DNA of 63,620 bases, the filler included, from Olpidium bornovanus S191 (taxonomy: Eukaryota; Fungi; Olpidiomycota), in assembly GCA_017911155.1 (NCBI GenBank). It is 27 parts of 27 records of this genome, joined end to end, with 100 filler letters (N's around TTAATTAATTAA, not from the genome) between each part and the next. Parts side by side here need not be neighbours in the genome. Positions count along the whole stretch, not along the records: positions 43,214 to 45,905 come from JAEFCI010000040.1; 26 more parts are not named here. One strand, given 5' to 3'. Positions 43,114 through 46,005 of the stretch are shown here, one piece after another. The notes under the pieces were generated by a model, which was given only the letters and a program-made list of their open reading frames with translations, searched no databases and was not told where the DNA came from. Position numbers and translations under genes: made by a program. Positions within the stretch are counted from its first letter, which is position 1. Each line of letters opens with the position of its first letter.

Positions 43114-43766
43114 NNNNNNNNNNNNNNNNNNNNNNNNNNNNNNNNNNNNNNNNNNNNTTAATTAATTAANNNNNNNNNNNNNNNNNNNNNNNNNNNNNNN
43201 NNNNNNNNNNNNNCATGCTAATATTCGTATATGATAAAAGTATTGTTATTACAAAATTTGTGATTTACCACAGGGACGGACAAATTGAGAGTGTCTGCAC
43301 ACGACGTCATACCGCGCCCGACAAATGCCGATCACGACGGCCCCAAATAATACTGAATGTACGGATTTCAATTGGATGTGAAGACATTCCACTGATGAAA
43401 TATGGAAAGTGTGCGCGAGACGTGAACTCCGCAGGAATGGGGAAAAGTCAATAATTTTTATGGGCGCGCGGCGCCCGCGCGCGGCAAAAAAAGCCCTTGA
43501 TGTAAGTGTTTTGTAAGGGGGTGGGTGGGGGGGGTACGCGCAATTGGTGGGGGGGGGGTTACGCGTAATTGACGGGCAAGGGAAAGGACGAAGAGGAAGG
43601 GGAGGGATGACGGAGAGGAGAACATGATGGCGCCAGGCAAGCAGGTAAACTCCGGTGTTTGTTTTTTTGGTTGCTTCCGTCTATATTATTATTGCAAAGA
43701 AGTTGCGGGCGCGGGGAAAAGGGGGGGGGGAAGCGCGGGGCGAGCGGGCGGCCGGTTTCCTTCCTT

Positions 43767-45033
43767 TCACAGGTCCGCGTTCCGACTAATAGACCTCGGT
43801 TTCACCATGACGTCGCTGCAGGCCAAGTAAAAGCCGCCGCTGTGGGGTGGAGAAAAAAAAAAAAAAAGACGGGATTGTCCGGGCGGGAGGGGAGTGAGGA
43901 GGCGGGTGGTGGGGGCGGGGCGGAGGGGGTGGGGCGGGAGACAGGTTTCGCGGAGTTAGACACGGCAAACAACAAAGTTGCTTTCGAAAAGCGCGCTCGA
44001 GAAAGGACAATAAAAAAAAAATAAAAAAGACTTACTCCGCTGCCGAATCCCACACCCATTGGCTTGATGACGGACGGCGGGTGAGGATAAGAAGAAAAAT
44101 TTCGATCGTTGTGAGAACAAGCAAAAGCCAATAAAGAAAGAAAAATATAGAAAAAGAAAAAAGAAAATGCACCCCCGAAAAAAGTCCCCTCTCTCTCCTT
44201 TTCTCTCTCTCTCTCTTCCCCGGCCCCCCTCCCCCCCCCTTTCGCTTTTGCCATCTCTCCGGCCGCAAAAAAAAGTTCAGAAACTCTTTTTCTCTCTCTT
44301 TCTCTTCCCCGGCCCCCCTCCCCCCCCTTTCTCCTTTGCCATCTCTCCGGCCGCAAAAAACAGTTCAGAAACAGAGAGAGGGAAAAAAAATGTCGTTCCG
44401 CTCACATTATCGCGTGCTCCGACGTCTCGTTCGCGGGGAGCGAGACGGTGACGCTCCTCCTGAAGATGTTGACGCCCGTGACGAGCGGCCGGAACTTCTG
44501 GCCCCTGCGGTACTTTATCGAGACCGTCACTCCCGGGTTGCTGGGGTGCGGGGTCGTGATATCCCACTTGATGGTGACATTCTGGCCGGCCGTGTACGCG
44601 CGGACGGGGGCGTTGGCCGGCGCCCTCATGCACGTCCGGAGCTGCGCGGGTGTCGGCGGCCGCGGCGAAAACTTGAGCCCACGCCCGACAGCTTGTCCGC
44701 CTAAGTGCATTTACGCAGAAAAAAGAAAAAAAAGTGTGGGGGGAAAAAGTGTGGGGGGAAAAAGTGTGGGGGGAAAAAGTGTGGGGGGGGAGGAGGGGAA
44801 GGGTTTAAACACCAAAACCCGACAAAAAATCGAAAAGAACAAAAAGAAAAAAAGTTCAACGGTCTGCTTTTTCCGGGTTTGATTTTGGACGACCGCGCCC
44901 CGTTCTTCTCCCCACAAATTTATCCCAACTTACGTCTCGGCGGAGGCTCGGTCAGAATGGCGTGGCCGTCGACGGCCTGGGGGGCAACGAGGAAAATCCC
45001 GGCGAACAGGGCGGCAGCGTGTACCCACTTCAT
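43767..45033 (-). CDS. Small secreted histidine-brace protein, LPMO-like (closest remembered pattern: AA16), complete, 4 exons, 164 aa
   Basis: Exons 44934-45033, 44406-44700, 44036-44062 and 43767-43839 total 495 nt and splice in phase. Signal MKWVHAAALFAGIFLVAPQAVDG, then His1 HAILTEPPPR; YTAGQNVTIKWDITTPHP; IIQWVWD..GGFYLACSDV. Confidence 0.8.
44190..44380. repeat. ~90-bp imperfect tandem duplication in intron 2 of the LPMO-like gene
   Basis: CTCTTCCCCGGCCCCCCTCCCCCCC..TTTGCCATCTCTCCGGCCGCAAAAAA..AGTTCAGAAAC occurs twice. Confidence 0.8.
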
Positions 45034-45820
45034 TTTTTTTAAGTCTTTTGGGAGAGAGAGACGAGGGTGGGAAATAGAGGGCGAGACTTTCTTTCTTTGC
45101 CTTTAAAATATTCTTTAGGCCGGCCTAAGAGTCAGGATTAAGGTGCGGGTTGGGGGGGGGGGGTTCGAAAAGACTTGGAATGTTTTATAAAACGGCGCAT
45201 TTTCTGTCGCCGGGTGGGAGGGTCGGGCGCGAGGAAGGAAAACGGGAGCCCCCGAGAAGAAGACGAGCGGGCGCGGCCACAGAGGCCGGGCCACCCGTAG
45301 CCCCGCGCGCGACGACCGACGGCCGCACCGCCGCCCGCGTGGAGGCCCCTTCCCCCTTCCCCCCCCTTCCCCCGCCTTTCCTTCCTTTCCGCCCCCTCTC
45401 CGGCCTCCCGCGCCGCGCTCCCCGACCGGACCCGAATGAATTTTCTTTCTTTCATTTTTTGTTCGCGCTTTATTTTCCGACGGGGCGGGTGTCAGGCCGG
45501 GCAAAGCACGCGGGCGCGTGTCCGCGTGGGTTGGTTGGCAAGGGCGGGGGGGGGGGTAATGCTGGTGTCGCGGAATTTTTCGGCTTTCCCCCCACAAAAA
45601 GAGTATTACTGGTGCCGGAAATTCGCTCTCCCCGGCGCTCCTGTCGAAGCCGAAGCTGAACGCGGGAAAAGGAGGGGCCAAAGGGGAAAAGAGAACGAGG
45701 CGGGGCGGTTCCCTCGCATAGGCCTTTTAAAAGCCCTTCAACGCTGCTTCCCATCTCTCGCCGGGCTTGGCGCGCGCCTTACTCCGTCCTTTCCTTCCGA
45801 ACTTGTTCTTCCGGCACAAA

Positions 45821-45871
<51 letters not shown>

Positions 45872-46005
45872 ACCCCGCCCCCGCCCCCCCCCCCCCCCCC
45901 CGTCCNNNNNNNNNNNNNNNNNNNNNNNNNNNNNNNNNNNNNNNNNNNNTTAATTAATTAANNNNNNNNNNNNNNNNNNNNNNNNNNNNNNNNNNNNNNN
46001 NNNNN

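Follow-up and report, generated by a model that had tools for sequence, protein, structure and literature searches.

A four-exon gene in Olpidium bornovanus that probably encodes a compact, secreted copper protein of the LPMO (histidine-brace) superfamily

The stretch of DNA analysed here (the window, 63,620 nt) includes at positions 43214-45905 the entire 2692-nt contig JAEFCI010000040.1 of Olpidium bornovanus, and all coordinates below are positions in the whole window. The sole recognisable gene of this piece lies on the minus strand, and its conserved residues suggest that it probably encodes a secreted single-domain copper protein of the lytic polysaccharide monooxygenase (LPMO), or histidine-brace, superfamily. 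When the gene was rebuilt base by base from the sequence with a script, four exons of 100 + 295 + 27 + 73 = 495 nt gave a product of 164 amino acids (aa) in an unbroken frame, reproducing exactly the in-phase GT-AG model that an earlier note on this DNA had proposed. The product reads MKWVHAAALFAGIFLVAPQAVDG up to the predicted cleavage site, then HAILTEPPPR...WDITTPHP...QWVWDSAADGGFYLACSDV...ADL to the stop, and contains exactly two Cys, Cys57 and Cys148, as that note had also stated. The features of the gene, with residues numbered along the 164-aa precursor and HMM standing for hidden Markov model, are as follows.

45033-44934, minus strand: exon 1, 100 nt, with the start codon (45033-45031), the predicted signal peptide (23 aa, 45033-44965) and the HAILTEPPPR motif
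44964-44962, minus strand: CAC codon of His1 in exon 1 (His24, profile position 1 of the family HMM)
44933-44701, minus strand: intron 1, 233 nt, GTAAGT..TTAG, GC 0.45 versus 0.67 in the flanking exons
44700-44406, minus strand: exon 2, 295 nt, domain core; in six-frame translation the family HMM gives this exon 81.3 bits by itself
44632-44630, minus strand: Cys57 codon, exon 2
44548-44546, minus strand: codon of the putative second brace His, His85, exon 2, within WDITTPHPSNPGV
Exon 2, minus strand: N-glycosylation sequons N74 (NVT) and N124 (NET), as sequence motifs
44405-44063, minus strand: intron 2, 343 nt, GTGAGC..CAAG
44062-44036, minus strand: exon 3, 27 nt, coding for (I)QWVWDSAA(D), with the invariant Trp134 and Trp136
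Exon 2/3 junction of the model, minus strand: reads ..GCGATAAT joined to CCAATGGG..
44035-43840, minus strand: intron 3, 196 nt, GTAAGT..ACAG, with a T15 pyrimidine tract
43839-43767, minus strand: exon 4, 73 nt, coding for (D)GGFYLACSDVMVKPRSISRNADL and the stop; the Asp141 codon is split by the junction, and Asp150 also lies here
Exon 3/4 junction of the model, minus strand: reads ..GCAGCGGA joined to CGGCGGCT..
43829-43827, minus strand: Tyr145 codon, exon 4
43820-43818, minus strand: Cys148 codon, exon 4
43769-43767, minus strand: stop codon, end of exon 4

The coding sequence has a GC content at third codon positions (GC3) of 0.836, while the introns, which are rich in simple repeats, have a GC content of 0.45-0.53. 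Part of the gene was already on record: exons 1 and 2 are annotated in GenBank as a 132-aa hypothetical protein of O. bornovanus, BJ554DRAFT_6123 (P0001), which spans 44406-45033, runs on into intron 2 to a stop (..SEHAIM) and is without the last two strands and their Trp134/136, Tyr145 and Cys148. What is new in the gene model is confined to exons 3 and 4 with their Trp/Tyr/Cys strand, and it is to them alone that the earlier description of the gene as hidden applies. Nor is the signal-peptide/His1 exon missing from the open reading frame (ORF) track, as had been claimed, since exon 1 appears as a 37-aa ORF at 44920-45033 once short ORFs are included. A word-index protein search with the spliced product returned a single match, the contig's own 132-aa annotation, and relatives were recovered only by exhaustive search.

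Support for the two new exons came from a family HMM built from the domains of 54 relatives, with Olpidium excluded. This HMM aligned with the spliced protein without a gap, HMM positions 1-131 corresponding to residues 24-154, at 158.7 bits, whereas the annotated 132-aa product scored 107.6 bits and covered profile positions 1-109 only. Because the gapless 158.7-bit fit needs both exon 3 and exon 4, it validates the two together, and it further argues that both junctions are right to the residue and that the mature domain begins exactly at His24. After the equivalent of exon 2, the relatives continue directly as A-V-[LV]-Q-W-x-W-[DA]-S-x-x-D-G-G-[FY]-Y-x-[GA]-C-x-D-[VI], and the Olpidium exon 2/3 join gives the gapless counterpart of its opening, A-I-I-Q-W-x-W; in a raw six-frame translation, the family HMM also picked up exon 4 separately, as ..GGFYLACSDVMV. 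At the level of homology, the four-exon structure was thus confirmed as correct and as more than a product of chance, and the GenBank model of BJ554DRAFT_6123 is truncated and needs correction.

Ahead of His24 lies a predicted signal region with n, h and c parts, in which Val at -3 and Gly at -1 fit the -3/-1 rule; in 46 Met-started relatives the aligned His stands at a median position of 21. The predicted mature protein has 141 aa, a mass of 15.5 kDa and a strongly basic pI of 10.9, and the conserved domain within it has 131 aa and 14.4 kDa. In contrast to many of its relatives, the Olpidium protein as modelled carries neither a stalk nor an anchor, and a search of the three minus-strand frames of 43214-43766 for a fifth exon encoding a Ser/Thr stalk or a glycosylphosphatidylinositol (GPI) tail gave nothing convincing.

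With the 132-aa product as query, exhaustive searching by phmmer recovered 86 further clusters at the 50% identity level, with E-values down to 5e-23 and colinear alignments at identities of 32-46%; the closest relatives of the Olpidium protein share 42-46% identity with it. Judged by these alignments, the protein is one more member of a conserved, unnamed family found mainly in zoosporic fungi (Chytridiomycota, Blastocladiomycota and Olpidium). The named members are all called "hypothetical protein", one of them bearing the automatic UniRef label "Chitin-binding type-4 domain-containing protein", and come from Chytridiomycota (Lobulomyces, Siphonaria, Chytriomyces, Obelidium, Spizellomyces, Geranomyces, Phlyctochytrium, Blyttiomyces, Nowakowskiella, Quaeritorhiza and Gorgonomyces) and Blastocladiomycota (Paraphysoderma and Blastocladiella). 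The family as a whole includes saprotrophs, an algal parasite and a root parasite. Literature searches covering chytrid LPMOs, AA15 in Chytridiomycota, Paraphysoderma, AA18, LPMO-like proteins and HMM-based LPMO discovery gave no description of this family; the LPMO families named there up to 2026 are AA9-11 and AA13-18, with AA18 being CelOCE, which is unrelated.

In most family members 127-134 aa separate His1 from the C-x-D motif, and since most members have a domain of this length, small size is a family-wide trait. The earlier proposal of a new compact subfamily stood as regards compactness and separation from ordinary AA16, but the compactness is common to at least 86 clusters and does not belong to this gene alone. 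In two Paraphysoderma sedebokerense paralogues, P0089 and P0038, everything that would lie between PxR and the conserved Cys is gone, and in P0089 the domain is reduced still further, to ~108 aa from His1 to C-x-D.

His24, Cys57, His85, Gly90 and Asp141, the last standing four residues before Tyr145, are each present in 56/56 domains, the second His is followed by an H-x3-P-G-V motif, and the residue two positions before Tyr145 is Gly in 55/56 members. Tyr145, Cys148 and Asp150 were required in choosing the 56-domain set, and their invariance rests instead on an alignment of 18 sequences taken by rank. Among 62 sequences with a complete C-terminal motif, 27 continue into a Ser/Thr/Pro-rich stretch that ends in a GPI-like, hydrophobic tail, six contain a membrane span internally and ten are short forms like the Olpidium protein.

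A further architecture was observed in distant relatives (P0060, P0064 and P0085, and also P0029, P0056, P0066 and P0081) from marine metagenomes and one Picozoa single-cell assembly, in which the LPMO-like ectodomain is followed by a membrane span. At least three of these membrane-span relatives carry a WW-domain-like motif in the cytoplasmic tail, for example GWQEHTDPGTGRAYYYNVNTGASSWVVP. An LPMO-like ectodomain joined to a membrane span and a WW-like tail is not known from any described LPMO.

Placement in the LPMO superfamily was supported by both sequence and predicted structure. Pfam PF03067 (LPMO_10) matched residues 60-151 of the spliced protein over profile positions 77-183 of 183, scoring 32.3 bits where the gathering score is 23 (E 2.1e-7), and also matched 14/18 aligned family members. 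For structure, we used an AlphaFold2 model of the Lobulomyces homologue P0002, which is 43% identical to the Olpidium protein, computed from a 14-sequence alignment. Its block-mean predicted local distance difference test (pLDDT) values were 78-98 across the domain and >88 in most blocks, and Foldseek against the PDB gave 20 significant matches, all of them LPMOs: the AA11 enzyme 7p3u (1.4e-6), the AA10 structures 2yow, 5wsz, 5ftz, 2bem and the 15.5-kDa 5aa7, and the AA13 enzyme 4opb among them, with modest TM-scores of 0.45-0.55 and sequence identities of 13-17%. When the family profile was run against PDB sequences, the matches were weak and local: AA13 4opb (2.9e-6), AA15 5msz (1.3e-4), AA16 7ze9 (2.4e-4), AA10 7okr (4.5e-4) and AA11 7p3u (5.8e-4). 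Because these weak matches are spread across AA families, they place the protein in the LPMO superfamily by sequence and not clearly within any structurally solved family.

The residues expected of a histidine brace could be matched one by one. His85 aligned with the His of APH in TdAA15A (5msz) and with that of RAPH in AaAA16. Tyr145 had Tyr158 of MtAA16A as its counterpart and, in AoAA13, the Tyr of Q-I-Y-L-S-C, and Trp136 aligned with Trp149 of MtAA16A, the spacing of nine residues from Trp to Tyr being identical; in the crystal structure of MtAA16A, Tyr158 is the axial ligand and Trp149 stacks on it (PMC10088020). Cys57 and Cys148 aligned with the AA16 cysteines of WLCKGY and ESCVD. In its alignments the family keeps counterparts of both brace residues, His1 and the second His, of the axial Tyr with the Trp that stacks on it, and of one Cys pair. 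The LPMO-like character and the brace residues put forward in the earlier note are borne out by these comparisons, and in all its testable parts that interpretation was supported.

One element of the site is different. A second-sphere motif N/Q/E-x-F/Y is common to AA9, AA10, AA11, AA13 and AA16, and AA16 has it as a conserved Q-T/N-Y (PMC6420742). The family does not have the AA16 form: the Olpidium protein has G-F-Y at this place, and the family as a whole has G-[FYS]-Y, behind an invariant Asp. As judged from these motifs, the family departs from all characterised LPMO families at this point. The change to G-F-Y had been overlooked in the earlier note.

Resemblance to AA16 had been proposed in the earlier note and proved real but remote. 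With the catalytic domains of AaAA16, AnAA16A and MtAA16A as reference (supplement of PMC10088020), hhalign aligned the family to AA16 with a probability of 97.2% (E 3.3e-11, 24% identity), all 131/131 query columns falling on AA16 positions 1-172. From the gaps in this alignment, ~41 residues are missing relative to AA16, most of them from the stretch that leads from PxR to the first conserved Cys, in agreement with the long post-PxR loop that had been said to be lacking. The family HMM gave 33.7 bits for AaAA16, 27.7 for AnAA16A and 19.3 for MtAA16A, and in the other direction a three-sequence AA16 HMM gave 20.1 bits for the Olpidium protein and 6-28 bits for family members. The protein shares with AA16 a signal peptide and, after it, H-[AG]-x-[VIL]-x-x-P-x-P-R, then a strand of the form Y-x-x-G-x-x-[VI] running to the second His, an L-Q-W-x-W segment with Tyr nine residues past the second Trp and then x-x-C-x-D, and a Cys pair that joins the N-terminal region to the last strand; GPI anchors, too, occur in some AA16 clades (PMC6420742). 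Unlike the three AA16 catalytic domains used, which have 167-173 aa, its domain has 131 aa, the family has two Cys where AA16 has six or more, and the H-x3-P-G-V motif past the second His is particular to this family. AA16 is found mainly in Dikarya and oomycetes, whereas the named members of this family are in zoosporic fungi. These comparisons indicate that the protein is a remote, stripped-down, full-length homologue of AA16 and not an ordinary AA16, and with scores of 19-34 bits in either direction, against 158.7 within the family, the high-scoring match to an ordinary AA16 that the earlier note had named as counting against its proposal was not obtained.

There were likenesses to other LPMO families as well. 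The solved structures best matched by the family profile in HMMER, AoAA13 (4OPB) and TdAA15A (5MSZ), have in common with the family the segment LP-x-x-x-S/C-x-x-x-V-L-x-W-x-W; AA13 also has Y-L-S-C-A-D-I, and the APH of AA15 aligns with the TIPH of this family. The alignment to these two is limited to the last 25-40 residues, and their domains are larger, at 233 and 201 aa; moreover, the Q-x-Y motif kept in AA13 is lost here. With AA10 and AA11 (CBP21 2BEM and 5AA7; 7P3U and 9EXJ), the likeness is the beta-sandwich LPMO fold predicted for the homologue model. The chitin-active AA10 domain 5AA7 (JdLPMO10A) has 15.5 kDa and shows that an LPMO active on chitin can have as few as 142 aa; the domain of the present family, at ~131 aa, is smaller still. 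X325/Bim1 proteins are secreted, GPI-anchored fungal histidine-brace proteins of the cell surface without carbohydrate-binding modules, with an Asp carboxylate at the copper (PMC13353379). The tail architecture of many relatives looks the same as theirs, although the Olpidium protein itself is without stalk or anchor. No X325 entry was found among the PDB sequence matches of the family profile or in the Foldseek list of P0002, a negative that presupposes X325 structures in the PDB.

In the reading that we prefer, the protein would be a minimal LPMO-type peroxygenase/oxidase acting on wall polysaccharide at or near the cell surface. Signal peptidase would cut after AVDG and free His1 (His24), whose amino group and imidazole would, together with His62 (His85; mature numbering first), hold one Cu. 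Tyr122 (Tyr145) would lie axial to the Cu with Trp136 (precursor numbering) stacked on it, and Cys34-Cys125 (Cys57-Cys148), as the sole disulfide, would link the N-terminal segment with the last strand. In the D-G-G turn, the invariant Asp118 (Asp141) would substitute for the missing second-sphere Gln/Glu. The site, once reduced to Cu(I), would be reactive towards O2 or H2O2, either on the cell surface or within the wall, and the candidate substrates are the chitinous wall of the fungus itself or the wall of the host in whose roots this endoparasite lives. In many relatives a Ser/Thr/Pro stalk with a GPI-like tail serves as tether, while the Olpidium protein, as modelled, is free and very basic.

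Several points weigh against this reading. The gene model rests on homology and composition rather than on transcripts, and the signal site on a sequence pattern. The fold is supported through the homologue P0002, and the adjacency of the two His is a prediction from alignment; a model of the 132-aa Olpidium product, which is without the last two strands, gave only non-significant Foldseek matches resembling fibronectin type III (FN3) domains, with 7ze9 at rank 5 (E 0.11, likewise non-significant), and is uninformative. Larger LPMOs build much of their substrate-binding face from a loop region that is shortened here. The common N/Q/E-x-F/Y motif is absent from the Olpidium protein, which reads D-G-G-F-Y, and this replacement by G-F-Y makes catalytic LPMO activity less certain. 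In the closest characterised family, MtAA16A and AnAA16A cleaved no polysaccharide (PMC10088020), and the X325 proteins provide a precedent for GPI-anchored, LPMO-like proteins that are not polysaccharide oxidases (PMC13353379). Finally, the assembly is metagenome-style and was made from non-axenic zoospores (PMC7865070), and the assignment of the contig to Olpidium therefore rests on the record label.

The strongest rival, which we regard as a serious possibility though not the probable outcome, is a copper protein of the histidine-brace type without polysaccharide-cleaving activity, being either an H2O2-making small-molecule oxidase, as reported for MtAA16A and AnAA16A, or a protein for copper capture or handling at the surface like X325/Bim1; in the copper-handling version, the invariant Asp141 might serve as a copper ligand. 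Such a role would be in keeping with the replacement of the second-sphere Gln by Gly in 55/56 members, with the invariant Asp two residues upstream of that Gly, with the shortened region after the PxR motif, and with the GPI-like tails of many relatives, as in X325 (PMC13353379), and MtAA16A and AnAA16A do show oxidase activity without polysaccharide cleavage (PMC10088020). The family also occurs alike in saprotrophs, algal parasites and a root parasite, which favours a housekeeping, self-directed role over a host-specific one. On the other hand, the family profile matched no X325 entry among PDB chains, the predicted axial Tyr and stacking Trp are retained, the chitin-active AA10 domain 5aa7 is nearly as small at 142 aa, and the proximity of Asp141 to the copper is a supposition from sequence. 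Within AA16 itself, AaAA16 was reported to cleave cellulose (PMC6420742).

Beyond an LPMO-type enzyme acting on wall polysaccharide, a bolder form of the preferred reading can be put forward only tentatively, as doubtful on present evidence: the family may be a new CAZy-level LPMO family with the smallest LPMO catalytic domain known (~130 aa, a single disulfide), in which the Asp of the D-G-G turn replaces the near-universal second-sphere Gln/Glu, and may represent a sister or ancestor-like form of AA16 at the cell surface of zoosporic fungi, with distant versions in which a membrane span and what looks like a cytoplasmic WW domain are joined to it. New LPMO families have each altered views of how copper attacks polysaccharides and have given tools for biomass conversion. 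If the proposal were true, no natural scaffold for studying or engineering such chemistry would be smaller than this histidine-brace domain of 130 aa with its one disulfide. The family-wide exchange of the second-sphere Gln/Glu for Gly, with an Asp upstream, offers a natural test of that residue's role. Members are found chiefly in the earliest-branching fungi, which are flagellated and have chitin walls, and are usually tethered to the surface; the family may therefore be relevant to how these lineages remodel their walls, encyst, penetrate hosts or take up copper, and to the origin of AA16.

An unlikely alternative is that the protein is a divergent member of CAZy AA16 and that its novelty is limited to the corrected gene model. 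The hhalign result (97.2%, E 3.3e-11) over the entire domain and the 33.7 bits given to AaAA16, with Cys, second His and C-terminal motifs aligned, speak for this view, and AA16/X273 was reported in a few Chytridiomycetes that are unnamed in the supplement of that report (PMC6420742). Between the groups, however, scores range over 6-34 bits, compared with 158.7 bits inside the family, and the PDB-chain matches to AA13, AA15, AA16, AA10 and AA11 are about equally weak (E 2.9e-6 to 5.8e-4). In addition, 7ze9 was not among the top 50 Foldseek matches of the full-length homologue model, and the Q-T/N-Y motif, the extra cysteines and the ~165-172-aa domain of AA16 are all missing here; the comparison with AA16 covers HMMER and hhalign against three catalytic-domain sequences. 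Far less probable than either rival is an artefact (a pseudogene, a chance chain of ORFs or a non-Olpidium contaminant contig): the contig is just 2.7 kb, with many low-complexity runs and an 80-nt poly-C at its end, the source material was non-axenic (PMC7865070) and the gene model is without transcript support, but the family-invariant residues are all intact in an open frame with a GC3 of 0.84 and a gapless fit to an independent HMM, and since the best relatives are only 42-46% identical, the contig does not come from any sequenced chytrid in the databases searched.

Homologous genes were compared at two further loci. The gene of Lobulomyces angularis (L001 713-1504) has three short introns (~50-60 nt), which interrupt other codons than those of the Olpidium gene, one of them lying only ~2 codons from Olpidium intron 3, and the gene of Chytriomyces sp. 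MP71 (L002 6001-6720) is intronless; intron positions are not common to the Olpidium gene and its relatives. The genes adjoining these two homologues gave no clue to function. On the Olpidium contig, the other long ORFs of the piece, on both strands, had no Pfam match, and the piece had no Rfam match. The contig end upstream of the gene (45822-45901) is an 80-nt run of C, ~92% pure; this could be a real homopolymer or could have arisen in sequencing or assembly. Tandem repeats were found within and beyond the gene: intron 1 contains a perfect 15-bp unit, AAAAAGTGTGGGGGG, repeated four times at 44729-44788, intron 2 contains a tandem duplication of an 88-bp unit (two copies, 93% matches) at 44195-44372, and in the 3' flank past the stop a 25-bp unit occurs twice at 43520-43571.

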